Shown here one piece after another: positions 4,929-62,600 of a stretch of 64,000 nt of DNA. The translations under genes were made by a program, and so were the position numbers. The notes beneath the pieces are model-generated. The model ran no database searches and was not told the DNA's origin. It worked only from the letters and a program-made list of their open reading frames with translations. Numbering within the stretch: the stretch's first letter is position 1; every line of letters starts with the position of its first letter. The stretch is from assembly GCF_000143415.4 (NCBI RefSeq), contig NW_003314275.1, positions 2,027,419-2,091,418 on the forward strand. The letters run 5' to 3'. Origin of the DNA: Selaginella moellendorffii (taxonomy: Eukaryota; Plantae; Lycopodiophyta).

Positions 4929-5765
4929 TTAGTGTTTTTCTTTCTTTTCTATTGTAATTAAGAAGTGAAAAGTATCAATCAAACCACAATATGTAAAAGC
5001 CAATAAGAAAAGCACTATAGAATAGCTCCAGAGAAACTTTTTCAAAGACAAATTCTTCAGTTTATTACTAGCAGAACCACTTTTTTGTAAATGCACAGAG
5101 GTCACAGTGCAACATACCAGCTTGCCGTCACTGTTGGCTGAGAGCGTGGCCATTTCCACGGCCTCTCCGTTGCTATACCTGCAACTCAGCTTGCCTCCCT
5201 CCAAAGAGCAGCTGGCTTTGGGATCCGAGGTACATGTCTTAACATCCAGGGAAGTATTGTCATTCTGTGTACTGTCCAATTTCTTGCAGGAAGCCACCAG
5301 CACGCCAGTGGCCTGGTCATAAGAAGTAGGAGTGCAACTATCAAGAAATTTATTGCAGGTGCCGGAGCCATCGTTTGTGTTGCAACACACCATGCTTCCA
5401 TCATTGTTGCCTGCATAATTCTCCATATCAACGGGGAGGGAGTTGTCATTGGTACAAGAGAAGATTGGAGATTTCCTTGATCCCTGTCCCTGGAGTTCGC
5501 AATTGGCCACTCCACCACACTCGTCTGTGCTCAAACTTGAATTGTGTGTAGAGCCATTGACCATTTTGCATGTTGCTTTCAGGACGTTGTTTCTATAAGA
5601 GAGGGGTGTACAACTTTTCAAAAAGCCTCCGCATGATGAATCACAACTCTACAAGAACCCAAATCAAATTTCCTGGCCGCAGAAGAATTTTCTTTGGTGT
5701 GAGCTTACCACGAGTAGAAATGTGTTGATTACAAACACCAACGACGTGCACACAAGCTTTGGCAT
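4929..5765 (-). CDS. CVNH (cyanovirin-N homolog)-like secreted Cys-rich protein, copy 1, with hydrophobic C-terminal tail
   Basis: Exon 1 at 5709-5765 (signal peptide MPKLVCTSLVFVINTFLLV) and exon 2 at 4929-5648. Two repeats of F-x2-S-C...L-x-A-[ST]-C...SL...N-x-D-G-x-[LM]-V-CC. Confidence 0.8.
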
Positions 5766-5934
5766 TGTGCTTAAGGTGATTTCTAATGTTCATTAGAAAA
5801 AATTGTGATGTCTTTGGGCTTTGTTAAATCCGGAATGCACACTAAAGGACGAAATACCATGTCTTATTTCTTGCCACCACAAGTTCTTTTGTTGACAATT
5901 GTGCATTATTTTATTCTTTTTTTTTAGAAAAACA

Positions 5935-6185
5935 AAAGGTGAAGAACAATGCCTCGAACTTTCGGGAGCCTGGTTGCCAGGTCCACTGTCGGGTCACTTC
6001 GCATGAACTTTTCATAGAGCACCACATCCTCTTGTCTCGCGCCATAAGCACTGATAGGCAGCTTCCACGTCCGCGTACGTGTTTGCTTCACTCGGCTGGA
6101 AAAAGACGGACAGTCCAAAGTGAAAAACTTAACCAGAGCTCATGGCCAAGTACAAGAACAATGAAAAACTGCAAAGTTCCTGTAG
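5935..6185 (-). pseudogene. ABHD17-like exon 3 fragment
   Basis: [17 protein letters not shown]...EDVVLY...DPTVDLATRLPKVRG; frameshifted and the nucleophile motif is destroyed. Confidence 0.8.
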
Positions 6186-6409
6186 AGCATAAAAGAAAAT
6201 ATATTTCCACAGCCACCAGCTTTCCTAAGTTCCATCTCTCGGAGCGTATGTCCAAAGTGATGGAAAGACAAGGTGCTTCTAGTCTGCCAGCTGTGATCTT
6301 CGTGTAACTTTGCAAATATTTATGTAAAAAGCCAAGAATAGCTCTAGAGATCAACAAGCTTTTCCAAAGACCTTCATTGTACTGAATGTTTTTATTATCT
6401 TCCTTCTGC

Positions 6410-7073
6410 TTAAACTGGTGCTGGTGCAGAACTGCAACATGCCACATTGCCATCATTGTTGGCTGCCAGAGTGACCATTTTCACGGCCTCTCCGCTGCTA
6501 TAGTTGCAACTCAGCTTGGCTCCCTGCAAAGAGCAGCTGGTATTGGGATCTGAGGTACACGTCCTAACATCCAGGGAAGCATTGTGATTCCATGTAGTGT
6601 CCACTTTCTCGCAGGAAGCCCGCAGCATCCCGGTGGTCGGGTCGTAAGAAGTAGGAGTGCAACTGTTGAGAAATCCACCGCAGGTGCCAGACTGATTACT
6701 TTTCCTGCAACACACCATGTTGCCGTCGTTGTTGCCCGCATATTCCTCCATATTGACGCCGAGGGAGTTGTTACTGGTACAAGAGAAGGTTGGAGCTGAT
6801 TGGCTTGATCCAGGGCGCTGGAGCCTGCAATTGGCCACTCCACCGCACTCGTCTGTGCTCAAACTTGACTCGTGCTTAGAGCCATTGACCATTTGGCAAC
6901 TTGCTTTCAGCACATTTTTCTTATAAGAGATGGGTGTACAGGTTTTCAAAAAGCCTCCACAAACTCTACAAGAAGCCAAATCAAGTTCTTTGGTCGCAGA
7001 AGAATTGTGAGCTTACCACGAGCAGGAATGTGTTGATTACAAGCATCAACAAGGCACACACAAGCTTATGCAT
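6410..7073 (-). pseudogene. CVNH-like copy 2, probably inactivated by an 11-bp deletion at the start of exon 2
   Basis: Exon 1 at 7017-7073 is intact. TGATGAATCAC, present in the paralogs, is missing at about 6961, which shifts the frame after the conserved acceptor. The downstream frame ends CCSSAPAPV. Confidence 0.72.
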
Positions 7074-7309
7074 TGTGAAATTGCTTTAAGATGGTCTATT
7101 CTCACGTTAGTTTTAAGTGATATCTTTGATCTTTGTTAGATCCGGAATGCACTTAAGGACGAAATACTAAAACTCTTTATTAGTTCACACGTGTTTTGAC
7201 AATGCATACCAATGTGCATTTTGTGACATTTTATGAAGAGCGAGTGGTGTAAATTAAACATGGATATGAACGAGAATAAGAACTTGGCCAGAAAACACAA
7301 CAATGCTCA

Positions 7310-7620
7310 TCTCTGGAATAGCTCTTGAAACACCAAAAGCTTGGTCTTTAGTGATACTTCCACGTTTCACTGTTGCTTCACACGTCTGGGATTATATCTG
7401 GCTCACGAGACCATCAAAACAGCTTATTATAATCCGTTGGTCTCATGCTTCTTCTTCTTGGTGGGCACCACAAGACCGCTAATGAATGAATGAATGAATA
7501 TCCCCAGGATTTGCTATATCCTTCAAAGGTCGTCTCAGATTCATCTGGCTACCATCAACAATCTGGAACCTTTGCCAATCACGTTGTCTTTGGATGATTT
7601 ATCTTCGTCTCGATGTAAAG
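7310..7620 (+). pseudogene. Decayed phytol kinase 3' fragments
   Basis: AAAGCTTGGTCTTTAGTGA and GCCAATCACGTTGTCTTTGGATGA match 4090-4255. Similar remnants occur at about 12050-12160, 13430-13480, 34800-35150, 45190-45300 and 46610-46920. Confidence 0.6.
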
Positions 7621-7741
7621 AGCTTCGTGGCTCTTCTTATAACAAGATATAAAATTTCTTTGAAGTGTACAGGATAAAAAGCTCTTGTAATAACAGGTCG
7701 TCTACCTGTTTCATAAAAATACAAGCGTTTTTTCTGTCTCG

Positions 7742-8790
7742 TTAGTAAGACCGGGTCCTTTGGATCCCTCCCCCGTTCCTTGGGCCACCGGATTTCTCAA
7801 GAGATATGATAAACTTGCGCAAGTGCCTGATATACTCTGGATAGAGCTCCAAGTTGCAGTGACCCCTCCTTTGAGCCACAGTGGCTCGTACTTTTCCTTG
7901 CAAAGATCCCACAGCTGCTTGCCGTGTGAGCAATCCACAACTTCGTCGCTGGTACCCTGTGAAAATGAAGATCAGATTCCTCACCTAGAACTAGAACCAA
8001 GTGGGGAAAAGAAGAAAGAATAAAGAAGAAACTTTATCACTTACGTGGATGACGAGCACGGGACAATTCACGCGTCTTATCTTTTCAATGTTCTGCAAGG
8101 AACCGAAGGTAGGAAAATCAAATCAAAGAACTCTCTTTTCATACCTTGTAGATATCAAACCAGTATGTTCTCTTGACGGGGTACATAACACGCAAGCCGG
8201 AGAGGATTGGACTGTGAAGAACAACGCCTCGAACTTTCGGGAGCCTAGGTCCACTGTCGGGCCACTTCCCACGGACTGTCCATAGAGCACCACATCCTTT
8301 TGTCTCACGCCATAGTCTCGCTCCAAGCACTGATAGGCAGCTTCCACGTCCGCGTACGTGTTTGCTTCACTCGGCTGGAAAAAGATGGACAGTCCAAAGT
8401 GAAAACCTTGACCAGAGTTCATGGCCAAGTACAAGAACAATGAAAAACTGCAAAGTTCCTGTAGCTAAAAGAGACAGTATAAAAGAAAATATGTTCTTTC
8501 TATCTACACAGAAAATGCCAGGCAAATAGTTATAAGAGGAAGTCAATGATAGAAACTTGGGAAAAAACCGATACAACAAAGACAATAATCAATGAAATAA
8601 TGGAAGAACAGCGAAAGAACGGCAGTGAGAAAGAACTCGAAAGAACTCCAACGAAACAAAGAGAAGGAAAAAAAAACAAAAAATCTCCAAGGACAGATCA
8701 GTGGAAGAGAGGAATTCCCATCCAAAAATCGCGATTTGTGGCTTACCCCATGACGTTCACCTGGAGATGGACGCTGAGCTCCACCAGACG
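7742..8790 (-). pseudogene. ABHD17-like hydrolase copy, 5'-truncated by retroelement sequence and frameshifted
   Basis: Near-identical to 47050-48200, but lacks exon 2 and most of exon 1 and has small deletions in exons 3 and 5. Confidence 0.88.
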
Positions 8791-12550: not shown

Positions 12551-13204
12551 CTAAGTGCAACATGTTATATTTCCATCATTGTTGGTTGCCAGAGTGGTCA
12601 ATTGCACGGCCTCTTCGGTGCTATAGTTGCACTTCAGCTCGCCTTCCACAAAATAGCAGACAACATAGGGATCTGAGGTACACTTTGGAACATCCAGGGA
12701 AGCATCGCCATTCAATGTAGTGTCCATTTTCAAGCACCGAGCCTTCAGCAGCCCGGTGTCCAATTCATACGAAGCAGGAGTGCAACTGTTGAGAAATCCA
12801 CCGCAGGTGCCAGACTGAGTACTTTTCCTGCAACACACCATGTTTCCGTCGTTGTTTTCCGCATATTCCTCCATATTGACGAGGACGTTGTTACCGCCGC
12901 AATAGAAGGTTGGAGCTGATTGGCTTGATCCAGGCTGCTGGAGCGTACATTTGACCACTCCACGGCACTCGTTTGTGCTCAAACTTGACTCGTGCTTAGA
13001 GCCATTGACCATTTGGCAACTTGCTTTCAGCACATTTTCCCTATAAGAGATGGGTGTACAGGTTTTCAAAAAGCCTCCACATGATGAATCACAACTCTAC
13101 AAGAAGCCAAATCAAGTTCTTTGGTCACAGAAGAATTGCGATCTTACCACGAGTAGGAATGTGTTGATTACAAGCACTAACAAGGCACACACAAGCTTAT
13201 GCAT
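12551..13204 (-). CDS. CVNH-like secreted Cys-rich protein, copy 3
   Basis: Exon 1 at 13148-13204 (MHKLVCALLVLVINTFLLV) and exon 2 at 12551-13096. Frame is open and ends CCT*. Confidence 0.82.
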
Positions 13205-13480
13205 TGTGAGATTGCTCTGAGATGGTCTAGGTCGTGTTCTCACGTTAGTTTTAAGTGATATCTTTGATCTTTGTTAGATCCGGAATGCTCTTAAGGACGA
13301 AATACTAAAACTATTTATTAGTTCACACGTGTTTTGACAATGCATACCAATGTGCATTTTGTCACATTTTATGAGGTGTAAATTAAACATGAACGAGAAT
13401 GTTTAACTTGGCCAGAAGCACAACAATGCTCATCTCTGGAAGAGCTCTTGAAACACGAAAAGCTTGGTCTTTAGTGATAC

Positions 13481-13830: not shown

Positions 13831-15126
13831 GTTCTTCCCGGTTCTGAAAGAGATCAATGGCGCGGTAAGGCGAGCAGAAATGCCGGCGTCGCTTCTTTCC
13901 CCATCGGCCGATTTCCAGTTTCAAATGCAGGCGTGCAATCGATCCGGCGCGCTATGCATGCTCCTTGCGAACAAACCGGCATGGAGAGTTTCTCCCGCAA
14001 AAAATGGGGCAGGGGACGATCTACGAGCAGCACGAAGAAGGGATTGCGCGTTGCCGCCATGAGCGCTATCCAAGAATTCCAGCAGGATTTCGGGGTGGTA
14101 GGAGCGGTGGTGGCTGGAGCTTATCTCTGGGTCCAAGGCTTCGAGCTACTCACTAGATTCAATGTCCTAGACCAGGTAAAGAACAAGACGTCGTTTCTTT
14201 CATCTATTTGTTTGCTTCCTCCTCCTCTGTTCTAATTGTCTCTTTCTTTCAGCGCAGAAGCTTTCTCGCAAGCTCGTCCATATGACAATGGGTCCACTCT
14301 TCATGCTTTCGTGGCCCATCTTCAGGTATCAACGAAAGAAAATCCTTTTCTTTCTCGAGAGCGCATCAAAGTTTTTCGGTTCTCAAACCGGTTTGTTTAC
14401 AGCTCTTCGTCGGCGTCCCGCTACATTTGTTCGCTAGTTCCACTGGCCAACGCTGTGCGTCTTCTAATCCTCGGCCTCGGTTTAGGAACAAACGAAGGGG
14501 TGGTGAAGTCGATGAGTAGAGATGGCGATGCCAAGTGAGTGGAGTATCATTTAAACAACACCAGAACCCGCATGTGGAAGATGAATTGCTTGCTTGTGGA
14601 AAAACGAGCTTCGATCTCAAATCAGAATCCTTGCTTCCTTCTTTTCTTCACTCGGGAAAAACACACTTGCTTGATCTCTCTTTAGAACTCGACTACCCTA
14701 TTTAAGCACGAAAATCTTACACCATCGCAACAACAAAACGCGTCGGGACACGATACGCTCGCTTTCTCTTTCTCTTTCTTCTTCCTGTAGTTACTTCGGC
14801 GTGTTTTCTCCCAGCGTCGACCGACAGTGTAGAAGTTCACATCCATACGAAAAATGGCACACTTTTGGCGGCCAAAAAAGCAGCTTGAGGTCGTTACAAA
14901 AAGTTGGTCCTTATTCTCGAGAGGTAAAAACTACCCGCAAAAGTTCCCGAAATCTACCGGCATTTGCACAAAAAAATTATCAACGCGGGAATATTATTTT
15001 GAGCTTCTCCAGATTTAATCAATCCTTCACGAAACTCTTGAAACGGTTTCTTCGCTCTTGATCCATCCCAATTGCCCAAAATCACAATTTGGCGCTCCTT
15101 AACAGTGGACTGTGCAGTGTTTTAGC

Positions 15127-15467
15127 TCACTTGCTGTAGTAATTGTAGGTGTGGGTGTAAACGTATACAACGCTAGAACCACCGCCCTCCTTCTTCTCGT
15201 CCTTCTTCTTTGGGGGCTCGTAATCGTTCTCGATGGAACGAAGAACGCTGTGGTGGCAATCCACCGCCTTGACCACGTCGTCCACATCAAATTTGCCGAT
15301 CACAACCAGGCCTGACGACTCCGATTCCACCTTATCAACTCCTGTCGAAAAAACCACACCAGATTCATGGTCTCCAGATCCAATCCAAAGATTATACGTT
15401 TGATCTTTTTGAGGGCGTTGATCTTTCCCTCGCAGCTCCAACAAGTAGAGAGTGTGACCTTCTTCAT
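15127..15467 (-). CDS. Small HMA (heavy-metal-associated) domain protein A
   Basis: Exon 1 MKKVTLSTCWSCEGKINALKKIK, intron, exon 2 VDKVESESSGLVVIGKFDVDDVVKA...PPKKKDEKKEGGG. CxxC motif plus a GV..V...vviGkfD pattern. TATAAAA lies about 115 bp upstream. A further 3' exon is possible. Confidence 0.7.
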
Positions 15468-16149
15468 GCTTTCAAAAAAAGAAAAATAGATCCAACCGGG
15501 AGATTTTTCCTTGAAACTTGCTCTCTCCTAGGGAAAATTAGCCGAGCTGCTATCGCGCTTGCTCGTCTTCGAACTGATTTTATAGCTGGATTCTACGTTA
15601 AGCCATCGTAGGACGACGCGTCTACTACCAAATTCCTCGCTACTTCAAAACACGAGGCCCGCGTCTGGGGGAAGACCATTTCACCAGGCTTTCGCAATGC
15701 AAAAGAAGATTTCACTCGTAGTTCCTTAAAAAAGATGAAATCTCATTTCTAAAGAAGATTGAAATTGATTTGCACAACCAGATCTTGTTTTCCTCTCTTA
15801 GGATCTTACATGCATAAGCATTTGCATGGCTCTCCGGAGTAGGTCCCAAGCCCAAATGTCTATAGACTATATCTATCTATCTATCTCTGTTTTTTTTTTC
15901 GCAAGTAGACAATGTCACCTTCTGCATCAGATGATGATCTCAGAACACGGCAAAAACAGTTCGACGTCGAAACAAAAAGTTGTTCTTGCCCTTGGCTCCA
16001 TTTGTTTTCTGTTTTTTCTCTGTTGGTTCGTCCCACCTTGTCACGTAATCTAGAGGTATACATACATGTGCGAATCTACGGTAGTACGACCTGCAACAGC
16101 TGAAGCATTGTAGATCTTATCAGTTATTCACACCTGAGCACTTAATCTG

Positions 16150-16310
16150 TTGAAAATCCAATAATCCCTCACGAAACTCTTGAAACTTTTGCTTAGAACA
16201 GAACCACCGCCCTCTTCCTTGTAATCTTTCTCGATGGAGTGAAGAACTCTATGGTGGCAATCCATTGCATTGACCACGTCGTCCACATCAAAGTTTCCAA
16301 TCAGGCCTAA
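16150..16310 (-). pseudogene. Degenerate small-HMA exon 2 fragment
   Basis: LIGNFDVDDVVNAMDCHHRVLHSIEKDYKEEGG; exon 1 is absent. Confidence 0.7.
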
Positions 16311-16911
16311 CGAGTCCGTAAGACGACGCGTCTACTTCCAAATTCCTCGCTAGTTCAAATTACGAGGCCCGTTTCTGGCGGAAGCCATTTCACCTGAAAG
16401 AAAATTTCCACACGGATCACAGTTTTATCGACGCGTCTAAATCTCGTGCCATCATGGATTTGTTTTGGTGTTGCAACTTGACACCCTCGTGCTCCCTTTC
16501 TGAAATCGCTGGAAGAAAAAGTCCATTCGAGCCGGGAGATTCACGGACCATTTTTTTAAAGTTTGAAGCTTGAATAGCATTATATAATCTTCTAAACAAT
16601 TCCAATCGCATAGCCTGAAACTCACTTGCAACTCCTCAGAAAATAAACCATTTATTTCTCTAAACAGGAGGAGGATCACTTTTAGGATAAAAATGATGTT
16701 TTGACGAAGTGAGAACTTTACTAGAGCTGAGAGCCACCATAGAGTCTCCGGTGTGTTTTCTTTCTTCTTTCTGCGGGATCAATATTTTAGATTCGCTTTT
16801 AATCTCTGAACCGCGTCGGTTTCAAGCTTTCGAAATTGCTTCACCTCCCATGAATTCAAGTATTTGAAGTGGAAGAGAAAAACTACTTCTATACACAAAC
16901 ACTATTTTAAC

Positions 16912-17250
16912 TCACTTCCAGTACTGGTTGTAGGTGTGGGTGTACACATATATAACGCTAGAACCTTCCTCCTTCTTGTCTTCCTTCTTTTTGGGGGGCT
17001 CGTAATTGTTCTCGATGGAACGAAGGACACTGTGGTGGCAATCCATCGCCTTTAGCACGTCGTCCACATCAAATTTTCCAATCACCACCAGGCCTGACGA
17101 CTCCGACTCCACTTTATCGACCCCTGTTCAGAGATTTCATGGAATCAGGGCCGCGATCCAATGCAAAGATTGTGCTATACCTTTGATCTTCTTGAGCGCG
17201 TCGGTCTTCCCCTTGCAGCTTTCACAAGTTGAGAGTGTCGCCTTCTTCAT
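16912..17250 (-). CDS. Small HMA domain protein B
   Basis: MKKATLSTCESCKGKTDALKKIKG/VDKVESESSGLVVIGKFDVDDVLKAMDCHHS...; same intron position as A. Confidence 0.7.
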
Positions 17251-18254
17251 GCTTGCAAGGAAAGGAAAATGGATCGAGATTACTACTTGCTTGCTCAAGA
17301 TGTTTGCTCAGAAAACCGAGAAATACGCTGCGAGATGCCTTGCTGCTAACGTTTGCGGTTTTTATAGCTTGATTCTACGGTACAGTCTTTGTAGGACCAC
17401 GCGTCACCACCAAATTCCTCGCGATTTCAGCGAATAGTCAAAGACGACCACAATGCAGAAGAAAATTCCACACTGTCTAGATCCGCGTTGTTGCAACTTT
17501 AACAGTCTATTCTTCTTATGAAGAGGACATTCCAACTAGCTGGGAGACCGATTCATCAAAGCCGCAAAAGATTGTCGCGTTTGAGCCTAGAACTCAAGTT
17601 GAGCAGCAAATCATACAGCAGCAAATGGGTGATTCCCTACTAGAAGTGGTCGTTGCCACTATTCCACACATCGCGTGGCACCGTGGGATGAACTTCATGA
17701 TGTTCCTTCTTCTCTTCTCTCATTATTGTCCTTGCGGGAACAATTTCGTGAAAGTTTCGGCCCCAAAAAGTTGTTTCCCGTGAGTTCGGACCAGTTAATC
17801 GATGGTTGTTTTTTACAACATAAAAAAGGTAAGGTAGGAAAAAACTCTGCTAGTTTACTATTCTAGAACTCCACACTGATCGATTAACTTTATGGAAACG
17901 CAGGGGTGGTGAAGTGGAATCCGATTCTTCTGGCTCTCCATTGAGAAGTATATCCTTGACTACGGCTGAGCACCGGCATTATTCATCAGTTTAATCAAAA
18001 AATATTCAAGTTTTGAAAATTTAATGCTCTGACAATTTCGCTAGAAAATATCCTTAAACCCTTATGTTAAACTGAGGGTTAAATTTTAAACTAAAGTATA
18101 AAGTGTGCGTGCGAAATAAGAACCCCTAAGAACTTGGTGCTATGCTCTTCTAGATCAGAAGCTCCTGAAGTTGCGCCAGACACGCGCCACCTCCCTTGTT
18201 CTTGCAGATCCATCCATCCCTTGCAAGTGGAAGAACAAATAACTATGCAGTGTT

Positions 18255-18604
18255 TTAGCACTTGCAATTGTAGTGATTGTAGGTGTGGGTGTAAACATAT
18301 ACAACGCTAGAACCACCGCCCTTCTTCTCCTTGTCCTTCTTTGGGGGCTCATAATCGTTCTCGACAGAACGAAGAATGCTGTGGTGGCAATCCATCGCCT
18401 TGACCACGTCGTCCACATCAAATTTGCCGATCACTACCAGGCCTGACGACTCCCATTCCACCTTATCAACCCCTGTTGTTCAAAAACAAGAAACGATATC
18501 AGCTTTCAAATGTCCAATCCAAGTTTGTACATACCTTTGATCTTCTTAAGCACATCAGTCTTTCCCTCGCAGCTCCCACAAGTTGAGAGTGTCACCTTCT
18601 TCAT
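18255..18604 (-). CDS. Small HMA domain protein C
   Basis: MKKVTLSTCGSCEGKTDVLKKIKG/VDKVEWESSGLVVIGKFDVDDVVKAM...HYNCKC*; a third exon near 18150-18220 is possible. Confidence 0.7.
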
Positions 18605-19582
18605 GCTTGCAAAAGGAGGAAAAATGGATCGAGATTTTTTTTTGAACCTTTGCTGAGACTTTGCAACTCCGAAGAACACGCTGCGAGATGCCTTGCTGCT
18701 CACGGTCGAACTTTGTGGCGGTTTTTATAGCTGGATTCTACAGTTTAGCCACCGCTAAATTGCCAAAGTCGAAGACCATTTCAAAGCTTCTCTCTTGCAT
18801 TGTATAGAAAGTTTTCAGAGCGTACACTGGACTTTCACATGGGCTTCCCTTTCTCGTGCCTCACATTTGACGTCATTTGATGAGTTGCAGCTTTTTGAAA
18901 TCGCTGACAAAACCCATGCTGGGAGACCAAAGAAGCGTCCTTGACTTAAACTTTTACCCCCACAATCGCGACTGGCCATCAACTTTGTCAAATCCATTCC
19001 AGCTGGGAGACCAAAGAAGCTTACATTGATCGCTTAAATCCATGGTAAGATTGAAAGGTCAGTGTACGTTCACGGAACATTTTTCTAAACTTTGAAGCTT
19101 GAATAGCATTATACATTCTTCTAAACAAATCAAATCGAGTCTGATACTGTGGCTCTCAGCTCTAGTAAAGTTCTATTTTGAACTCACTTCATCAAAACAT
19201 CATTTTTATCCTGCAATTGAAAAGTGACTTCGTTCAAGTCTCCTCCTGTTGAGAGGAATAAAACAAATGGTTTTTTTCAGAGTTCCACTCTTTAAAATGT
19301 GATGACGCACGTTCATTTTCAAACTCTTAGGAAGAGAATTAATCTCCTCAAAGTTCAAGGTTAAGAACGAACCACATTCCTTTACAGTCAAATGCACCGG
19401 TGCATCTTCTTTCTTTCTGTGGCATCAATGTTTTAGATTCACTTTTGAACTCTGAGCCGAGAAAAATTAATGCCCTTGATTGAGACATCAACTTTAGAAA
19501 TTGCTTCACCTCCCATGAATTCCACATTCAAGAATTTGAGGTAGAAGAGAAAATCTATTTTTACACACAAACACTATTTAAC

Positions 19583-19934
19583 TCACTTCCAGTACTGGTT
19601 GTAGGTGTGGGTGTACACATATATAACGCTAGAGCCTTCTTCCTTCTTGTCTTCCTTCTTTTTGGGGGGCTCGTAATTGTTCTCGATGGAACGAAGGACA
19701 CTGTGAGGGCAATCCATCGCCTTTAGCACGTCGTCCACATCAAATTTTCCAATCACCACCAGGCCTGACGACTCCGATTCCACCTTATCGACCCCTATTG
19801 GGAAAACCGCACCAGAGATTTCATGGAATCAGGGCCGCGATCCAATGCAAAGATTGTGCTATACCTTTGATCTTCTTGAGCGCGTCAGTCTTCCCCTTGC
19901 AGCTTTCACAAGTTGAGAGTGTCGCCTTCTTCAT
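19583..19934 (-). CDS. Small HMA domain protein D (near-identical to B)
   Basis: MKKATLSTCESCKGKTDALKKIKG/VDKVESESSG...YNQYWK. Confidence 0.7.
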
Positions 19935-20599
19935 GCTTACAAGGAAAGGAAACTGGATCGAGAAAACTAGTTGCTCGCTCAAGATGTTTGCTTGAAGCTT
20001 GCCAGAAAATCAAGAAATACGCTGCGAGATGCCTTGCTGCTAACGTTTGCGGTTTTTATAGCTTGATTCTACGGTATAGTCTTCGTAGGACGACGCGTCA
20101 CCGCGATTTCAGCGAATAGTCAAAGAGAAGAAAATTCCACACGTCTAGATCCGCGGTGTTGCAACTTTAACTGTCTATTCTTCTTATGAGAGACCGATTC
20201 ATCAAAGCCTGCAAAAGGTTGTCGCGTTTGAACCCAGCAGCAAATCATACAGCAGCAAGCCTTCGGGCATGGGTGATTCCCTACTCAAAGTGGTCGTTGC
20301 CACTATTCCAACACATTGCGTGGCACCGTGGGAAAGCGAAGAGACGAACTTCATGATCAGAGACTGTTCCTTCTTCTCCTCTCTCCACTTCACCACCCCT
20401 GCGTTTCCAAAAAGACTTTACCTTTTTTTTTATGTTGTAACTTTTTGGCGCCGAATCTCCCATGAAATCCCGCAAGGTGATATAGACATTGAACAAAAGG
20501 TTGTTCTTATCTTGGGCCCTTTGTTCTCTCTCTCTCTCTCTCTCCCTCGCTCTGAGATTCTTTCTGTCACGGAATCTAGAAGTATAGCCTTGACTACGG

Positions 20600-20850
20600 C
20601 GACGTGCACTGGCATTTGTGCTATGCAAAGTCTTTTGCATCTAACTTTTGGAAACCTTACTTCCACGATCGAATTCCACGTCGAGGCATCTCGCTGGAGC
20701 ATCCCATCGAACGTTCTGCGAGACCGAGGATGAATTTGGCCATAGTGTTTTAGCAGATTCTTTCCACTGCGGATGCAAAGCGTGATCATCACATTCCAAG
20801 AGATCTCGTTCTTCTCTGGAGCCAATTTGAATGCTCTTCATGGGGCCAGA
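20600..20850 (-). pseudogene. PLS-class PPR gene debris
   Basis: PEKNEISWNVMI and RRTFDGMLQRDASTWNSIV are typical PPR P/S-motif junction sequences. There is no long ORF. Confidence 0.55.
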
Positions 20851-20991
20851 AGCCTCAGGGCACCAGTTTCATGCAGAACACTTTCACAAAAAAAAGAAAG
20901 AAAGAGTTTCTAGATCTGAAACTCTTGAAATTATTTCATACACACCCTTGTTCTTGCAGATCCATCCATCCCTTGCAATTGGAAGAACAAA

Positions 20992-21356
20992 TTAGCACTT
21001 GCAATTGTAGTGATTGTAGTTGTGGGCGTAAACATACAAAACGCTACCGCCCTCCTTCTTCTCTTCCTTCTTCTCTTCCTTCTTCTTTGGGGGCTCGTAA
21101 TTGTTCTCGATGGAACGAAGAACACTGTGGTGGCAATTCATCGCCTTGACCACGTCGTCCACATCAAATTTGCCGATCACTACCAGGCCTGACGTCTCCG
21201 ATTCCACCTTATCAACCCCTGTTGTTCAAAAACAGAAAAATCCACGAGATCAGCTCTCGAATTTCCAATCCAAAGTTTGTACATACCTTTGATCTTCTTA
21301 AGCGCATCAGTCTTTCCCTTGCAGCTCCCACAAGTTGAGAGTGTCACCTTCTTCAT
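20992..21356 (-). CDS. Small HMA domain protein E (similar to C)
   Basis: MKKVTLSTCGSCKGKTDALKKIKG/VDKVESETSGLVVIGKFDVDDVVKAM...HYNCKC*. Confidence 0.7.
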
Positions 21357-32474: not shown

Positions 32475-33269
32475 TCAATCAAACCACAATATGTAAAAGC
32501 CAATAAGAAAAGCACTATAGAATAGCTCCAGAGAAACAAGCTTTTTCAAAGACAAATTCTTGAGTTTATTACTAGCAGAACTACTTTTTTGTAGATGCAC
32601 AGAGGTCACAGTGCAACATACCAGCTTGCCGTCACTGTTGGCCGCGAGAGTGGCCATTTCCACGGCCTCTCCGTTGCTATACCTGCAACTCAGCTTGCCT
32701 CCCTCCAAAGAGCAGCTGGCTTTGGGATCCGAGGTACATGTCTTGACATCCAGGGAAGCATTGTCATTCTGTGTACTGTCCAATTTCTTGCAGGAAGCCA
32801 CCAGCACGCCAGTGGCCTGGTCATAAGAAATAGGAGTGCAACTATCAAGAAATTTATTGCAGGTGCCGGAGCCATCGTTTGTGTTGCAACACACCATGCT
32901 TCCATCATTGTTGCCTGCATAATTCTCCATATCAACGGGGAGGGAGTTGTCATTGGTACAAGAGAAGATTGGAGATTTGCTTGATCCCTGTCCCTGGAGT
33001 TCGCAATTGGCCACTCCACCACACTCGTCTGTGCTCAAACTTGAATTGTGTGTAGAGCCATTGACCATTTTGCATGTTGCTTTCAGGACGTTGTTTCTAT
33101 AAGAGAGGGGTGTACAACTTTTCAAAAAGCCTCCACATGATGAATCACAACTCTACAAGAACCCAAATCAAATTTCCTGGCCGCAGAAGAATTTTCTTTG
33201 GTGTGAGCTTACCACGAGTAGAAATGTGTTGATTACAAACACCAACAACGTGCACACAAGCTTTGGCAT
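32475..33269 (-). CDS. CVNH-like protein, copy 4, with a hydrophobic (GPI-signal-like or TM) C-terminus
   Basis: Exon 1 at 33213-33269 and exon 2 at 32475-33152. Ends ...SSSASNKLKNLSLKKLVSLELFYSAFLIGFYILWFD*. Confidence 0.82.
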
Positions 33270-33909: not shown

Positions 33910-34584
33910 TTAAACTGGTGCCAGTGCAGAACTGCAACATGCCACATTTCCATCATTGTTGGTTGCCAGAGTGGCCATTTTCACGGCCTCTCCGTTGCTA
34001 TAGTTGCAACTCAGCTTGGCTCCCTGCAAAGAGCAGCTGGTATTGGGATCTGAGGTACACGTCCTAACATCCAGGGAAGCATTGTGATTCCATGTAGTGT
34101 CCACTTTCTCGCAGGAAGCCCACAGCATCCCGGTGGTCGGGTCGTAAGAAGTAGGAGTGCAACTGTTGAGAAATCCACCGCAGGTGCCAGACCGATTACT
34201 TTTCCTGCAACACACCATGTTGCCGTCGTTGTTGCCCGCATATTCCTCCATATTGACGAGGAGGGAGTTGTTACCGGTACAAGAGAAGGTTGGAGCTGAT
34301 AGGCTTGATTCAGGCTGCTGGAGCCTGCAATTGGCCACTCCACCGCACTTGTCTGTGCTCAAGCTTGACTCGTGCTTAGAGCCATTGACCATTTGGCAAC
34401 TTGCTTTCAGCACATTTTCCCTATAAGAGATGGGTGTACAGGTTTTCAGAAAGCCTCCACATGATGAATCACAACTCTACAAGAAGCCAAATAAAGTTCT
34501 TTGGTCGCAGAAGAATTGTGAGCTTACCACGAGTAGGAATGTGTTAATTACAAACACCAACAAAGCACACACAAGCCTATGCAT
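33910..34584 (-). CDS. CVNH-like secreted protein, copy 5
   Basis: Exon 1 at 34528-34584 (MHRLVCALLVFVINTFLLV) and exon 2 at 33910-34476. Frame is open and ends CCSSALAPV*. Confidence 0.82.
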
Positions 34585-45719: not shown

Positions 45720-46364
45720 CTAAGTGCAACATGCTATACTTCCATTATTGTTGGTTGCCAGAGTGGTCATTTGCACGACCTCTCCGCTGCTATAGTTGCA
45801 CTTCAGCTTACCTCTCTGCACATAGCAGCTGGTTTTGCGATCTGATGTACACCTTTTAACATCCAAGATAGCATCGCCATTCCATGTAGTGTCCACTTTC
45901 TTGCACCAAGCCAACAGCTTCCCGGTGTCCACTTCATAAATAGTAGGAGTGCAACTGTTGAGAAATTCACCGCACTGAGTAGTTTTCCTGCAGCACACCA
46001 TGTTTCCGTCGTTGTTCCCCGCATATTCCTCCATATTGACGCTGAGGAAGTCGTTACGACAAGAGAAGATTGGAGCTGATTGGTTTGATCCAGGCGGCTG
46101 GAGGCTGCAATTGGCCACTCCACCGCACCCGTCTGTGCTCAAACTTGACTCGTGCTTAGAGCCATTGACCATTTGGCAACTTGCTTTCAGCACATTTTTC
46201 TTATAAGAGATGGGTGTACAGGTTTTCAAAAAGCCTCCACACGATAAATCACAACTCTACAAGAAGCTAAATCAAGTTCTTTGGTCGCAGAAGAATTGTG
46301 AGCTTACCACGAGCAGGAATGTGTTGATTACAAGCATCAACAAGGCACACACAAGCTTATGCAT
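45720..46364 (-). CDS. CVNH-like secreted protein, copy 6
   Basis: Exon 1 at 46308-46364 (MHKLVCALLMLVINTFLLV) and exon 2 at 45720-46256. Frame is open and ends CCT*. Confidence 0.82.
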
Positions 46365-47049
46365 TATGAAATTGCTCTAAGTTGGTCTAGGTGGTGTTCT
46401 CACGTTAGTTTTAAGTGATATCTTTGATCTTTGTTAGATCCGGAATGCACTTTAAGGACGAAATACTAAAACTATTTATTAGTTCACACGTGTTTTGACA
46501 ATGCATACCAATGTGCATTTTGTGACATTTTATGAAGAGCGAGTGGTGTAAATTAAACATGGATATGAACGAGAATAAGAACTTGGCCAGAAGACACAAC
46601 AATGCTCATCTCTGGAATAGCTCTTGAAACACCAAAAGCTTGGTCTTTAGTGATACTTCCACGTTTCATTGTTGCTTCACGCGTCTGGGATTATATCTGG
46701 CTCATGAGACCATCAAAACAGCTTACTATAATCCGTTGGTCTCATGCTTCTTCTTCTTGGTGGGCACCACAAGACCCTGTAAACAGCTAATGAATGAATG
46801 AATGAATATCCCCAGGATCCGCTATATCCTTCAAAGCTCGTCTCACATTCATCTCACTACCATCAGCACTCTGGAACCCTTGCCAATCACGTCGTCTTTG
46901 GATGATCTATCTTCGTCTCGACGTAAAGAGCTTCGTGGCTCTTCTTATAACAAGATATAAAATTTCTTTGAAGTGTACAGCATAAAAAGCCCTTGTAATA
47001 ACAGGTCGTCTACCTGTTTCATAAAAATACAAGCGTTTTTTCTGTCTCG

Positions 47050-48464
47050 TTAGTAAGACCGGGTCCTTTCGATCCCTCCCCCGTTCCTTGGGCCACCGGA
47101 TTTCTCAAGAGACATGATAAACTTGCGCAAGTGCCTGATATACTCTGGATAGAGCTCCAAGTTGCAGTGACCCCCTCCTTTGAGCCACAGTGGCTCGTAC
47201 TTTTCCTTGCAAAGATCCCACAGCTGCTTGCCGTGCGAGCAATCCACAACTTCGTCGCTGGTACCCTGTGAAAAATGAAGATCAGATTCCTCACCTACAA
47301 CTAGAACCAAGTGGGGAAAAGAAGAAGGAATAAAGAAGAAACTTTATCACTTACGTGAATGACGAGCACGGGACAATTCACGCGTCTTATCTTTTCAATG
47401 TTCTGCAAGGAACCGAAGGTAGGAAAATCAAATCAAAGAACTCTCTTTTCATACCTTGTAGATATCAAACCAGTATGTTCTCTTGACGGGGTACATAACA
47501 CGCAAGCCGGAGAGGATTGGACTGTGAAGAACAACGCCTCGAACTTTCGGGAGCCTGGCCGCCAGGTCCACTGTCGGGCCACTTCCCACGGACTGTCCAT
47601 AGAGCACCACATCCTCTTGTCTCACGCCATAGTCTCGCTCCAAGCACTGATAGGCAGCTTCCACGTCCGCGTACGTGTTTGCTTCACTCGGCTGGAAAAA
47701 GATGGACAGTCCAAAGTGAAAACCTTAACCAGAGTTCATGGCCAAGTACAAGAACAATGAAAAACTGCAAAGTTCCTGTAGCTAAAAGAGACAGTATAAA
47801 AGAGAATATGTTCGTTCTATCTACACAGAAAATGCCAGGCAAATAGTTATAAGAGGAGAGAATTCTATCGTACCTTTCCACTAGATGCTCCGTAGCCTGA
47901 ATAATCGTATCTGCACGAGGAAGAAAAAAATTCAAAAAATACGAAAACGAAACCAGTCAATGATAGAAACTTGGGAAAAAACCGATACAACAAAGACAAT
48001 AATCAATGAAACAATGGAAGAACAGCGAAAGAACAGCAGTGAGAAAGAACTCGAAAGAACGCAAACGAAACAAAGAGAAGGAAAAAAAAAACAAAAAATC
48101 TCCGAGGACAGATCAGTGGAGGAAGAGGAATTCCCATCCAAAAATCGAGATTTGTGGCTTACCCCATGACGTTCACCCGGAGATGGACGCTGAGCTCCAC
48201 CAGGAGCTCATACATTTGTCCCAAATCCGCGGCATTCCCATGCGAGTAGAGCAGCGTGAGGCGCGCGGCGGAATGGTGGACGTAGATCCCCACAATGTCT
48301 TGCCCTCGCTTCGTCTTCATGCTCACCACATCGACGTGATCCCGGTTGAGAACATCCGAGAGGACCAAGCGGCCAGTGATCTGGTCCCGGATCACTGCGT
48401 ATGACGGAGGCGTCGGGGGAAAGAAGGCAAACCTAGCTGCAACTGTGGATGTCACACCGCCCAT
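47050..48464 (-). CDS. ABHD17-like alpha/beta hydrolase (putative protein de-S-acylase, ABAPT family), 5 exons, intact
   Basis: [46 protein letters not shown], nucleophile [26 protein letters not shown] (Ser-Asp-His triad). Confidence 0.93.
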
Positions 48465-50002: not shown

Positions 50003-51436
50003 TTACATTCCAAGAACCAATGTCCCGGGATCACGTAGCACCAAACTATTGTCTAACTTTTCTTGATCCGGGCACGATCCATCCAGGGAAACCCACCAGG
50101 TCTTGACTTGGCGATCCAATCCACCACTCACAACCCGGGCTCCAGCCCCGATAGACGAGGAAGAACAAGCAGCCATAGACACCGATTTCACCGGGCCTTG
50201 ATGCCCCTTGATCACGCACAAGCACGAGTGAATCGCTGTGAATCTCTCCCTCGACCACACGCGGATCGTCCTATCGGCGGATCCACTGCAGAGAAAGAAA
50301 TGCCCATCTTGGACGCCGCTGGAAATCGCGAGGCACAGCACCGCCATGCAATGGCCCCGCAGGGCATCCACCGCCGCCATATGCATCGCCGTCTCCTCGC
50401 GCTCCCACACCACGATTGATCGATCGCTCGACGCCGAGTAGAGGTAGCCCGACGAAGAATCCAGCGCCAGGGCGTTCACTGACGATTTGTGGCGCTCCAG
50501 GACCGCGACGAGCGACAATCCAATCTGTGCCTTGTTCTTCCCTCCCAAGAAAGAAGAACGCTGGGAATTAGAACAGAGCTCCCAGGCTTTGATCTTGCCA
50601 TCGGCGGCAGCGGTGTAGACAAATTGCTGCGCGGCGGCCACGGCATTGATCGCATCGTCGTGGGCCGCGCGCACGGAATTCAGGCACTTCCAGTCAGCGG
50701 CGCGCCAGATCTTGAGCGATCGGTCCCAGGAGGCCGAGAAGACGAGATCTTTGGTGGCGGCCAGGCACGAGACCGCGTCGGCGTGCTGGATCCAGAGCTT
50801 CTTCCGGTGGCGGCGCACCTGGATGTAGCTCGAGGGCAGGATGGATCGCGAGAGGACGTCCTTGACTGTGGGAAGAGTGTGGCAGAGCTCGATTTCCTCG
50901 CTAATTATTCCCTGTTCTTGACGATGGCGCTTCTTCTTTCGCCACACACGAATCTTCCCGTCCTGGTGGGCGGTCAAGACGCAATTTTGATGCTCTAGAA
51001 TGGCTTTGATGCTGCCCCCGCGCGAGCCCACGGCCTCGATTTCCTTAGAAGCGCAGGGATTTTGGTGGATTCCATGGCTCTCGGTGCCGACGAGGAGGAG
51101 CTCTGGGCTCTCTGTGGCGCAGAGGGCGGTGATGCCGGATTTGGAGGCGATGGTGGTGGAGGGCAGCGACTTGTAGGGGAAGTTCTTGAAGACGCAGCTG
51201 GTGTAGAGACACAGGAGCGCCGAATCGACGCTGCTACCGCGCTGAAAGGACGAGACCGATGGGAGGCTCGAGGCAGAGGACTGATGCGAATAAGAAGATC
51301 TGATGGAGAGTTTAAAGTCGATGGAAGACGAGGAATTGGAACATCGGGAGAAGGAAGAAGTCGAAGAGCAAGAAGCTGTTGACGATTCTAGCGAACTTGC
51401 CTGATCAGCTGCGCTATTGCAAAGCCCGAGCTCCAT
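50003..51436 (-). CDS. Single-exon WD40-repeat protein (JINGUBANG-like family)
   Basis: 477-aa ORF with TAHQDGKIRVW, RRHRKKLWIQHADAVSCL, SASWDRSLKIW, AHDDAINAV and SGSADRTIRVW. Confidence 0.9.
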   Translation of the reverse strand: MELGLCNSAADQASSLESSTASCSSTSSFSRCSNSSSSIDFKLSIRSSYSHQSSASSLPSVSSFQRGSSVDSALLCLYTSCVFKNFPYKSLPSTTIASKSGITALCATESPELLLVGTESHGIHQNPCASKEIEAVGSRGGSIKAILEHQNCVLTAHQDGKIRVWRKKKRHRQEQGIISEEIELCHTLPTVKDVLSRSILPSSYIQVRRHRKKLWIQHADAVSCLAATKDLVFSASWDRSLKIWRAADWKCLNSVRAAHDDAINAVAAAQQFVYTAAADGKIKAWELCSNSQRSSFLGGKNKAQIGLSLVAVLERHKSSVNALALDSSSGYLYSASSDRSIVVWEREETAMHMAAVDALRGHCMAVLCLAISSGVQDGHFFLCSGSADRTIRVWSRERFTAIHSCLCVIKGHQGPVKSVSMAACSSSSIGAGARVVSGGLDRQVKTWWVSLDGSCPDQEKLDNSLVLRDPGTLVLGM

Positions 51437-57444: not shown

Positions 57445-57448
<4 letters not shown>

Positions 57449-57500: not shown

Positions 57501-57580
57501 TAGTTTAGGGCACCAGGAAGTTTGAGAGTTTTTAGGGCACCAGGGAAGATTCATGGTTTTAATATTAGATTTTTTAGGGA

Positions 57581-60027: not shown

Positions 60028-60165
60028 AGCAACAAGCTGAACAGATTTTTCCAAAGACGAAGTTCTTGCTGTTCTTTTGTCTCGTTTATTTATTTTGGAG
60101 TTTACGCACATAGGTAATTTTTTTCTTAAGTATTATCATTTTTAATTTTAATTTTTTTCTTCTGC

Positions 60166-60875
60166 TTAAACTGGTCCTGGTGCTGGCGCTGGTGCTGGTG
60201 CTGGTGGTTTTGCAGGACGAGTGCAACACTCGAGCGTTCCATCATCGTTGGTTGCGAGAGTAGCAATTCCCACGGCTTCCCCAGTGCCATACTTGCAACT
60301 CAGCCTGGTTCCCTCCAACGAGCAGCTGCTTCTTGGATCTGAGGTACACGTCTTGACATTCAGGGAAGCTTTGTCATTCTGTGTACTGTCGACTCTCTTG
60401 CAGGAAGCCAGCAGCATCCCGGTGGTGTCGTTGTAAGACTTAGCAGTGCAACTATCGAGAAATCCACCGCAGGAGCCGGAGCCAGAGCCGTCGCTGGTCC
60501 TGCAACACACCAAGCTTCCATCGTTGTTGCTGGCGTACCTCTCCAGGTCGACGGGGAAGGAATCGTTGTTGGTGCAAGTGAAGATCGCGTTTGGTGCTAG
60601 CGAGGAGGTCCGGAGCTGGCAATCGGCGACTCCACCGCACTTTTCTATGCTCAAGCTCGAGTTGTGCATGGAGCCATTAACCGCTCGGCAGCTCGCTTCT
60701 AGGACTTTGTTTGTGTAGGAGAGGGGTGTACAGCTTCTCAGGAAGCCTCCACATTGATCACAGCTCTACAAAAGAAAAAAAAAAGTCAAGTGTTTTGGAG
60801 TCTCTTTACTATGCTTACCACAAGCACTAATGTGTTGATTACAGCCACCAGCAAGATGCACAGAAGCTTATCCAT
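60166..60875 (-). CDS. CVNH-like secreted protein, copy 7, with Ala-Pro repeat tail
   Basis: Exon 1 at 60819-60875 (MDKLLCILLVAVINTLVLV) and exon 2 at 60166-60765. Ends RPAKPPAPAPAPAPGPV*. Confidence 0.82.
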
Positions 60876-61863
60876 TGTGATATGGCTAACACTGATGAGT
60901 GGTTTGTGGTATTACTTAAAGTACCTTCTTGATCTTCGTTAGGTCCGGAATGTATGTTAAAGGACAGAATGGCACTGAAGACAGCCATTTGTATGTGTAT
61001 GCTAGGGACGTATGATACGATGCATGTAAAAGTCTGGTGAAAAACATTTAATAGGATTTTAAGCTTAGTCTATTGTAATTAGTTAAATGACAATATGCTA
61101 AACTTAACCATTTGGGACAACTTATTGCCCAGCATATGTTGCATGGTTAGCAAACACTGTTTTGATTGTTATAATTTTGTTAAATTGAAAACTAAATCCT
61201 CAATGGAAATTATCAAATGCATTGAAGAATTATTAAATCCAGGTGACATAGCAGTGAGTCTCCATAGCAAAAAATTAAAAGTTAATGGCAGTTAACACTT
61301 TGCATGTGATATTTGTCATAATGCCTTCTTCTTTTACCTCACGCAATTGATAACTTCCCATTGGCTGAAAGCAAACATCAGCATGATTATTAGCTAAGAC
61401 ATGGTTAAAGAGATAACCCTTTGACAGTTAACCCCTATTGGATGGCTGCCATTGGCTAGATCCACAGCCCAGAAAGTTCAGCAACTCCTCCTTATTGTGA
61501 TAGATTATTTTATAAGATTTTAGCTTCAGTTTAATTTTATTGGTTAGAAAAATGTTATTATAATGATTGTTTATTATTTTTAGATTTATTAATTTTAATT
61601 TCTGGTGAGAAAGTCAAAAGCTGTTAGCCCATCCATTAAAAAATAATAATAAAATCTGGATCATTAAAGGCACAAAAAAGGAATCTTCTCGAAGAAGCCA
61701 GTAGTGTGCTAATTGAACACCATTTTTTTTGGCCAGGTGGCAACAAAGAAACGGAAGGACATACCATCTTTAATCTTCCATACAAAATGTGGGGAGGCCT
61801 CATGAATTCTCTTTTTTCAAAGTAATTTTACTATGTTCGTGCAAATGTCACATTCTCGTAAAC

Positions 61864-61870
61864 CTATAAA
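61864..61870 (+). promoter_or_regulatory. TATA box of CVNH-like copy 8
   Basis: CTATAAA about 40 bp upstream of the ATG at 61909. Confidence 0.5.
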
Positions 61871-61908
61871 CACGCATACTTCTGTGTTACTAACATTGAC
61901 ACAAAGAA

Positions 61909-62600
61909 ATGAAGCAAGCGATTAGAGCTAGCTGGATTTGGACCTTGGCGATCATCTCTTTTGCAAAATGCAAGTTCTTTGTTGTAAGTATTCTATAATT
62001 TCCATGTTGATTGTCGCTAAATTCTCTTCTTTTGTCCTGATATTTGCTTAGAGTTGTGCTGAACCTTGTGGAGGATTCATGAAAAGCTGCACACCTCTCT
62101 CGTATGAGAATTTTGTCCTCAAAGTCGAGTGCAACACAATCAAGGGTACCCCCCACACCACAGACTTTGACCTGAGAAGCTGCGGGAATGGAGTCTCCAG
62201 CTGCGAAGTCCACGTTGAGCCATCGATTCCACTCGTCTGCGTCGATGCCCGCGAGGCAGCAATCGACATGAACACCTATGCCGGGAACGACGACGGATCC
62301 ATCGTTTGCTGCAACAATCCCAAGATCCAGGCTTGCGGCGATTTCCTCGACACGTGCACGCCCATGGGCTACGATCAGGCCTCTGGATCGCTCGTCGCGA
62401 GCTGCGAGAGGGACCACGACAAGCCGCCCAACGAAGACGCCTTCATCAATCTCAAGACTTGTACCAGGAGCGCCAGCACAAATTGCAAACTGGACCAAGG
62501 TAAGCTGAGCTGCCAGGACGGGAACGGCGCGCCGATCGATCTGGGTCGCGTCGCCGGCAACCGCGAAGGAGTGCTCTTGTGCTGCGTTCTCCAAGAATAA
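61909..62600 (+). CDS. CVNH-like secreted protein, copy 8 (most divergent, opposite strand)
   Basis: Exon 1 at 61909-61983 (MKQAIRASWIWTLAIISFAKCKFFV) and exon 2 at 62052-62600. Same intron position and Cys pattern as the other copies. Confidence 0.82.

Follow-up and report, generated by a model that had tools for sequence, protein, structure and literature searches.

The stretch of Selaginella moellendorffii DNA analysed here (contig NW_003314275.1, positions 2,027,419 to 2,091,418; hereafter the window, 64,000 nucleotides [nt] in length) contains a cluster of eight gene copies encoding cysteine-rich proteins that belong to the cyanovirin-N (CV-N) homology family, CVNH. In our reading, these are probably real, unannotated genes of S. 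moellendorffii, and each would specify a secreted protein of ~19 kDa composed of two tandem abridged CVNH domains connected by a short, variable Ser/Gly-rich linker.

Gene structure and annotation status of the cluster

Gene copies were identified by open reading frame (ORF) listing together with tblastn searches employing the family's own proteins. Eight two-exon copies were found within a 58-kb stretch, of which seven are intact and one is broken; the tblastn searches of the window yielded no additional copy or fragment beyond these eight. In all copies, an ATG exon encoding a hydrophobic leader (57 nt or 19 codons in copies 1-7, and 75 nt or 25 codons in copy 8) is followed by a phase-0 intron of 51-68 nt (GTAAG...AG) and by a single exon 2 that encodes the whole mature protein. 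A preliminary description of this DNA had proposed eight two-exon genes sharing a signal-peptide exon and a phase-0 intron. This structure was present in all eight copies, but copy 2 proved to be frameshifted, and the number of intact genes was reduced to seven. Exon 2, or parts of it, served as the query for the searches, alignments and folds described below; leader exons were translated and inspected only.

Copies 1 to 7 are encoded on the minus strand. Copy 1 (4929..5765) has exon 1 at 5709-5765 (19-residue leader), an intron of 60 nt at 5649-5708, and exon 2 at 4929-5648; its two-unit domain occupies 5109-5648 and is followed, after the final Cys-Cys, by a 59-residue C-terminal extension with a hydrophobic tail. 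Copy 2 (6410..7073; exon 1 at 7017-7073, intron of 51 nt at 6966-7016, exon 2 ORF at 6410-6965) is probably a pseudogene. An 11-nt deletion right behind its splice acceptor causes a frameshift, such that a stop is encountered 14 codons on when the copy is read from its own leader exon; the remaining CVNH frame (6410-6955) is whole and shares 93% identity with copy 5. Copies 3 to 7 are intact: copy 3 (12551..13204) has exon 1 at 13148-13204, the intron at 13097-13147 and exon 2 at 12551-13096; copy 4 (32475..33269) has exon 1 at 33213-33269, the intron at 33153-33212 and exon 2 at 32475-33152; copy 5 (33910..34584) has exon 1 at 34528-34584, the intron at 34477-34527 and exon 2 at 33910-34476; copy 6 (45720..46364) has exon 1 at 46308-46364, the intron at 46257-46307 and exon 2 at 45720-46256; and copy 7 (60166..60875) has exon 1 at 60819-60875, an intron of 53 nt at 60766-60818 and exon 2 at 60166-60765, ending in a Pro/Ala-rich tail. 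Copy 5 was used as the reference for models and searches, with unit 1 at 34207-34476 and unit 2 at 33934-34206. Copy 8 (61909..62600), also intact, lies on the plus strand, with exon 1 at 61909-61983 (25-residue leader), an intron of 68 nt at 61984-62051 and exon 2 at 62052-62600.

The domain of copy 4 is 98% identical to that of copy 1, but the frame of the C-terminal extension differs between the two past the residues ...LKK. Neither copy has the stop that follows the final Cys-Cys in the other copies (4929-5108 in copy 1 and 32475-32612 in copy 4, minus strand). Both run 45-59 codons into T-rich sequence and thereby acquire hydrophobic tails, which are read in different frames because of a 4-nt indel. 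This difference in frame suggests read-through into the former 3′ untranslated region (UTR). The tails may thus represent former 3′ UTR, or alternatively they may be a membrane or glycosylphosphatidylinositol (GPI)-type signal.

Comparison with public annotation was based on window positions 40003-61436, which are 100% identical to scaffold GL377579.1 (GCA_000143415.2; 2.76 Mb); over this checked part, record position equals 2128857 minus window position. Across this region, NCBI calls an RBR ligase, a 524-residue protein, a poly(A) polymerase, a WD40 gene (single exon, 50003-51436, minus strand, called on GL377579.1) and a hydrolase, and no gene is called at copies 6 and 7. When the ORFs that begin at an ATG in copies 7 and 8 were looked up by exact match in public assemblies, no matching called gene was found. 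Moreover, word-index protein searches with the copy 5 mature protein and with an alignment of all 16 units gave no match. Given that neither these searches nor the exhaustive search described below returned a close protein, all eight genes are taken as unannotated in the collections searched. An origin from contamination or as transposon cargo was also considered, and it was ruled out by the host-type short introns and by the 2.76-Mb scaffold, which carries ordinary plant genes on both sides.

A census of S. moellendorffii lectins reported 27 genes with cyanovirin domains (25 single and 2 double), amounting to 11.8% of lectin genes (Van Holle & Van Damme 2019, PMC6362431). Our literature search for a double short-unit CVNH subtype found no description of one. 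Within a lectin family whose large size in S. moellendorffii is already established, the cluster represents an undescribed variant.

Membership in the CVNH family

The mature domain (Ser-Cys to the final Cys-Cys) comprises 177-181 residues with 17 Cys (9 + 8). Self-alignment revealed two units of ~85-90 residues each, with 39% identity over ~89 residues (E 3e-15), which suggests recent duplication of a ~88-residue unit. The linker between the units is 8-12 residues long, Gly/Ser-rich, variable in length, and of low predicted local distance difference test (pLDDT) score in the models described below. In the 16-unit alignment, the eight Cys positions of each unit align in 16 of 16 units, with the F, N and G residues of the motifs likewise invariant. 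The two internal repeats with eight Cys each that had been described from the DNA alone were thereby recovered, as were all of the motifs named at that time (F-x2-[ST]-C, L-x-A-[ST]-C, S-L, and [DN]-[ML]-x2-Y-A-x-N-N-D-G) and, in copy 1, the Cys-stapled segment that had been quoted. It should be noted that the term Cys-stapled "insertion" is a description of the sequence and not an established event.

Pfam CVNH (PF08881, gathering score 24.5 bits) matched all eight copies with E values of 1e-10 to 9e-5. Seven ORFs scored 25.8-42.2 bits, including 33.7 bits for copy 1, 42.2 bits for copy 2 (on its downstream frame), 36.4 bits for copy 3, 36.2 bits for copy 4, 32.3 bits for copy 6 and 38.4 bits for copy 8. 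The truncated ORF of copy 7 scored 23.6 bits, and unit 1 of this copy reached 28.8 bits when scanned alone; hence seven copies exceed the gathering score as ORFs and copy 7 exceeds it through unit 1. Unit 1 alone scored 25.4-28.8 bits in copies 1, 5 and 7. The best sequence match in the PDB was CrCVNH of the fern Ceratopteris (2jzj, E 0.004). A language-model atlas search placed a CVNH cluster at rank 2 with a score of 0.89, a result that is weakly suggestive.

The family profile was used in an exhaustive HMMER search of 1.84 billion representative proteins, which returned 71 matches at E ≤1e-3, with the best at 1.4e-16. No match fell below 1e-30 among these representatives, and only distant CVNH relatives were recovered. 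All ten matches that were scanned are CVNH proteins; most matches are bacterial proteins with 4-10 regular half-domains of ~51 residues and four Cys each, and no match carries the 85-90-residue unit. A half-domain hidden Markov model (HMM) constructed from 223 bacterial CVNH repeats matched the two units at E 1e-12 and 1e-9. Taken together, the Pfam scores above the gathering score, the identity of every profile-search match tested, and the CVN/CVNH chains at the top of both fold searches (see below) bear out the CVNH homology put forward in the preliminary description. Its proposal of an amplified, lineage-specific subfamily also agrees with the tandem copies and with a nearest relative at E 1e-16 among the 1.84 billion representatives.

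Each unit resembles a shortened CVNH domain

AlphaFold models were built on shallow alignments containing paralogues only (8 rows for the two-unit model and 16 for the single unit). The two-unit model had a pLDDT of 72.6, with a disordered linker (pLDDT <50), and Foldseek with this model found weak CVN matches only (E 0.035). By exhaustive structural comparison, residues 104-181 of the same model aligned to positions 7-102 of 2jzj, and residues 11-91 aligned to positions 6-108 of 2l2f. When a single unit was folded alone by using the 16-unit alignment, the model showed seven strands, a pLDDT of 82.9 and a predicted TM-score (pTM) of 0.71. With this single-unit model, the top 25 Foldseek matches were all CVN/CVNH chains, mostly with a probability of 1.0, and unrelated chains remained <0.2. 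The TM-score by query (TMq) was 0.51-0.64 for monomeric chains and ~0.37 for swapped-dimer entries. VIA-align gave Z scores of 8.3 (5c8o), 7.5 (1n02), 7.4 (2jzj) and 6.9 (2l2f), whereas the first unrelated chain scored 3.3; 80-83 residues were aligned over chain positions 1-102, and for 2jzj 81 residues were aligned with a root-mean-square deviation of 2.7. In the ESM Atlas, TMq to CVNH clusters was 0.68-0.69. The fold predicted by all three comparisons is thus of the CVN type.

Profile alignments also took a single unit beyond one half of the domain. For unit 1 alone, Pfam aligned residues 9-67 to model positions 1-62, which correspond to the first domain half plus the start of the second. 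When compared by hhalign with an alignment of the two-half CVNH domain, unit residues 10-91 covered positions 1-101 (96%, E 3.4e-9, 78 columns). The units do not reproduce the canonical domain of ~100 residues with two complete ~50-residue halves and ten strands: they are 85-90 residues long, have seven predicted strands, and, in both the hhalign and the structural alignments, lack ~20 residues of the canonical second half. Against the extended chains of domain-swapped CV-N, VIA-align placed unit residues 10-76 on one half (51-99), and from this alignment the first hairpin of the unit is read as the regular hairpin that follows the sheet.

The preliminary description had viewed each repeat as a canonical ~50-residue half-repeat carrying a 25-30-residue insertion. 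A single unit covering the whole CVNH fold (81-83 residues, Z 7.4-8.3) does not fit that layout, and neither do the Pfam placement of unit 1 on model positions 1-62 and the hhalign placement of unit 10-91 on positions 1-101; the half-repeat-plus-insertion architecture is probably wrong. The single-unit model, the superposition onto whole chains and the profile-profile alignment to the full domain together indicate that, as far as these models can be relied upon, each protein most likely consists of two abridged CVNH domains in tandem, each locked by putative disulfides.

The alternative that retains the earlier layout holds that the whole mature protein is one CVNH domain, in which two ~50-residue half-repeats each bear a ~28-residue Cys-stapled insertion, the N-N-D-G hairpins are exchanged as in CV-N, and the insertions are surface decorations. 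Formally, an insertion can be recognized, given that the half-domain HMM matches unit residues 1-41 and that N-D-D-G-x-L-x-C appears ~30 residues further on. The extra segment also occupies the same place in both units, and Pfam aligns protein residues 63-130 to model positions 33-93, across the unit boundary. Yet one unit alone spans CVNH monomer positions 1-102 with 80-83 aligned residues, each unit of the two-unit model separately aligns to a whole CVNH chain, Pfam carries unit 1 into the second half of the domain, and hhalign favours the unit as the full domain. Moreover, the Gly/Ser-rich, length-variable and poorly ordered linker of 8-12 residues is unlike the short hinge of CV-N, and the 39% identity between units suggests that the ~88-residue unit was duplicated recently. 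We therefore regard the single-domain layout as unlikely.

According to the two-domain reading, the unit would retain a three-stranded sheet with the canonical Cys pair, and its C-terminal N-N-D-G hairpin would pack on this first sheet to form the equivalent of CV-N "domain A". The hairpin after the first sheet, stapled by extra Cys and carrying a degenerate N-x-D-G, would stand where the other lobe would be, with ~20 residues of the second sheet having been lost. Eight Cys per unit would suffice for four putative disulfides.

Proposed secretion and sugar binding

The leader exon encodes 19-25 residues with a hydrophobic core (mean Kyte-Doolittle value of 2.4-3.0, and 1.3 in copy 8), and an N-G-S sequon is kept in copies 1-7. 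From the leader exon and the conserved sequon we infer that the proteins are secreted, as had been proposed previously.

In 16 of 16 units, [ST] precedes the first Cys, and the N and G of the N-N-D-G motif do not vary. The N-terminal strand and the N-N-D-G hairpin would correspond to the domain-A sugar site of CV-N. The ligand of CV-N is Man-alpha-1,2-Man. Family membership together with the conservation of the strand and hairpin suggests that the proteins may bind mannose-type glycans. Each unit would then hold one glycan pocket, built from its N-N-D-G hairpin and its C-G-G-F-L-x-[ST]-C strand at the N terminus, and the protein may act as a bivalent, disulfide-hardened extracellular lectin for mannose-type glycans on microbes. 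A role in defence is a hypothesis.

It is also conceivable that the CVNH-like scaffold is not a lectin and instead serves as a secreted Cys-rich binder of proteins or membranes (an antimicrobial peptide, an enzyme inhibitor or a signalling ligand), with the variable hairpins as the interaction surface. In their putative extra disulfides, and in a rapid divergence concentrated in unit 2 and the stapled hairpins, the proteins are reminiscent of the cysteine-rich peptide families of plants. The CVNH sequence signal of unit 2 is weak, and a precedent is provided by the fungal effector SsCVNH, which is reported to target a plant peroxidase (PMC11064801). This non-lectin alternative appears quite unlikely to us, given that the N-terminal strand and the N-N-D-G hairpin are the most conserved parts of the proteins, N and G being invariant in all 16 units, and that these parts would correspond to the domain-A sugar site of CV-N.

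Divergence, selection and duplication history

Copy 7 is more divergent (62-67% identity to copies 1, 4 and 5, and 53-54% to copies 3 and 6), and copy 8 is the most divergent (35-47% to the other copies). For the older pairs, that is, among groups 1/4, 2/3/5/6, 7 and 8, the ratio of nonsynonymous to synonymous substitution rates (dN/dS) was 0.16-0.67, with pairs involving copy 8 saturated at synonymous sites. In the older pairs that were tested by bootstrap (copy 1 or 5 versus copies 5 and 7), the ratio was significantly <1. Judged from their coding sequences, the older copy pairs thus show purifying selection, and none of the 17 Cys has been lost even where the amino-acid sequences differ by up to 65%.

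Among the young copies (2, 3, 5 and 6), dS was ~0.11-0.13 and dN/dS was 1.05-1.47. Their differences start ~120 nt into exon 2 and are densest, at 22-33% per 60 nt, where unit 2 has its stapled hairpin. Positive selection was considered here and was not established as significant, the pairwise dN/dS values >1 in copies 3, 5 and 6 having bootstrap P values of 0.11-0.31. Copies 2 and 6 are nearly alike in 5′ flank, leader exon and intron (~3% difference) but differ by 11.3% in the mature coding part. This contrast could reflect diversifying selection or, equally, gene conversion of the 5′ part.

Copy 6 (45720-46364) is mosaic-like. It departs from copy 2 (6410-7073) by 0-3.4% in the 5′ flank, leader exon and intron, its 3′ flank differs by ≤3.8% from that of copy 3 (12551-13204), and its mature coding part differs by 11-15% from those of copies 2 and 3. 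Such a pattern suggests recombination or gene conversion among paralogues. Larger duplications were evident as well: the block with copies 1 and 2 (4723-8474) is duplicated at 32222-35969 with 91% identity, and the copy 2 block at 6343-8540 matches the copy 6 block at 45650-47857 with 93% identity. Fragments of an alpha/beta-hydrolase (8123-8440, 33376-33750 and 47019-48464) were duplicated alongside the lectin blocks. Only the hydrolase copy at ~47050-48464 is called by NCBI, and the others look like pseudogene pieces carried along by segmental duplication. The cluster probably grew by tandem and segmental duplication, with the ongoing divergence of the younger copies being concentrated in unit 2 and the stapled hairpins.

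A cluster of silent or decaying relics, in which unexpressed duplicates drift towards pseudogenes among transposons, might explain why none of the eight genes is annotated, why copy 2 is frameshifted, why the ancestral stop has been lost from copies 1 and 4, each of which runs on into T-rich 3′ sequence in its own frame, why dN/dS is ~1 or higher among copies 2, 3, 5 and 6, and why retrotransposons with long terminal repeats (LTRs) interrupt the cluster; but it is improbable in view of the seven intact ORFs of ~180 codons, the 17 Cys kept at up to 65% amino-acid divergence, the dN/dS significantly <1 in older pairs, and the splice sites, leader exon and 19-nt upstream motif (described below) kept even in copy 7, and annotation commonly misses short two-exon genes.

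Several observations weigh against the reading of these genes as functional copies encoding two tandem abridged lectin domains. Its structural part depends on AlphaFold models from paralogue-only alignments of 8 and 16 rows; Pfam gives a weak match or none to unit 2 alone; the hhalign path is gapped and of low confidence in the middle; and Pfam, applied to the whole protein, also aligns the unit 1 hairpin plus the unit 2 sheet as one CVNH stretch. Sugar binding would follow from family membership only, and some CVNH proteins act by protein binding, as is reported for SsCVNH and a plant peroxidase (PMC11064801). All eight genes are missing from public annotation, and one of the eight copies (copy 2) is broken. 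In addition, the dN/dS of ~1.2-1.4 in the youngest copies is not significantly >1 (bootstrap P 0.11-0.31), and relaxed constraint is as likely an explanation as diversifying selection.

A bolder version of the two-domain reading can be offered as a tentative possibility, one that we do not expect to hold in full. It envisages a lycophyte "mini-CVNH", a single sugar-binding lobe of ~85 residues with four disulfides, that was doubled and amplified, came under positive selection in its hairpins and unit 2, and would now constitute a secreted, unannotated recognition arsenal in the style of innate immunity.

Comparison with known CVNH proteins

The Selaginella units share F-x-x-[ST]-C, A-x-C, S-[IL]-[DN] and N-x-D-G-x-[LMV] with CV-N and CVNH proteins (PF08881; CrCVNH 2jzj, TbCVNH 2jzk, GzCVNH 2l2f and MoCVNH3 5c8o). 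They also have in common with them the canonical first Cys pair and, as predicted, the three-stranded sheet plus hairpin (Z 6.9-8.3, TMq up to 0.64). In CV-N, the disulfides are Cys8-Cys22 and Cys58-Cys73 (PMC11952781). Both Cys of the pair equivalent to Cys8-Cys22 are invariant in 16 of 16 units and align to the two Cys of the half-domain HMM; a bond between them is putative. A further likeness to the fern-type CVNH would be the signal peptide, which is putative in the Selaginella copies. The canonical CVNH domain has ~101 residues, ten strands, two near-equal halves and 0-2 disulfides; in contrast, the Selaginella domain has ~85-90 residues, seven predicted strands and eight Cys, most of the second sheet is gone in the models, and two such domains stand in tandem.

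The best sequence relatives are bacterial CVNH proteins made of multiple repeats, with four Cys in each half-domain (E 1e-16 to 1e-11). These share two extra Cys with the Selaginella units, one after S-L-D-x-x-x and the other after N-x-D-G-x-L-x. However, they are built from 4-10 regular repeats of ~51 residues, without the abridged half, the Cys-Cys pair, the Cys before G-G-F, or introns. The other S. moellendorffii CVNH genes, counted in the 27-gene census (PMC6362431), are from the same plant and the same family; given that no annotated protein in public collections matches below E 1e-16, the annotated members represent other subtypes. KAF3931659.1 of Dactylellina cionopaga was the only listed match that aligned as one stretch over the whole unit (query 5-87). 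This protein is a CVNH with a short Cys-rich mid segment, but it is fungal, has a single unit and a different Cys pattern, and matches very weakly (E 1e-3); it probably represents a variant that arose in parallel, not an orthologue.

CVNH lectins attract study for two reasons: they are antiviral and antifungal glycan binders, and their pseudo-symmetric, domain-swapping fold serves as a model. If the two-domain reading is true, a self-contained single-lobe CVNH unit with four disulfides would provide a measure of how far this fold can shrink, and such a unit might be a compact, stable scaffold for the engineering of glycan binding. With this cluster, the CVNH family of S. moellendorffii, which was large already, gains eight unannotated genes, and this suggests that annotation-based lectin censuses undercount the family. 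The cluster also offers a small, datable tandem array for asking whether seed-free plants diversify secreted lectins in the way that seed plants diversify defence families. No major open question is changed by the cluster.

Upstream motif and genomic surroundings

A window motif search identified the 19-nt motif CATTCCGGAYYTAACRAAG at seven sites on the minus strand (5819-5837, 7131-7149, 13269-13287, 33331-33349, 34649-34667, 46429-46447 and 60934-60952). The motif sits 54-78 nt upstream of the ATG in copies 1-7, and these seven matches compare with 0 expected in 100 shuffles. It was retained even in the diverged copy 7; the window contains no further site, and copy 8 lacks the motif upstream. 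We consider this motif a candidate promoter or 5′-UTR element. Copies 7 and 8 are arranged head-to-head (60875-61909), with their ATGs 1,033 nt apart, and the two copies may share a bidirectional promoter in the stretch between them.

The cluster is interrupted by an LTR retrotransposon at 23617-30258, whose ORFs on the minus strand encode gag, protease, reverse transcriptase, RNase H and integrase. Its 344-bp LTRs (23617-23960 and 29915-30258) are 98.8% identical, suggesting that the element entered the lectin cluster recently. At ~38350-41620 there is a second gypsy-type remnant. Finally, a tandem array at 15109-21557, between copies 3 and 4, consists of approximately five diverged repeats of 1.3-1.5 kb that are 79-88% identical.

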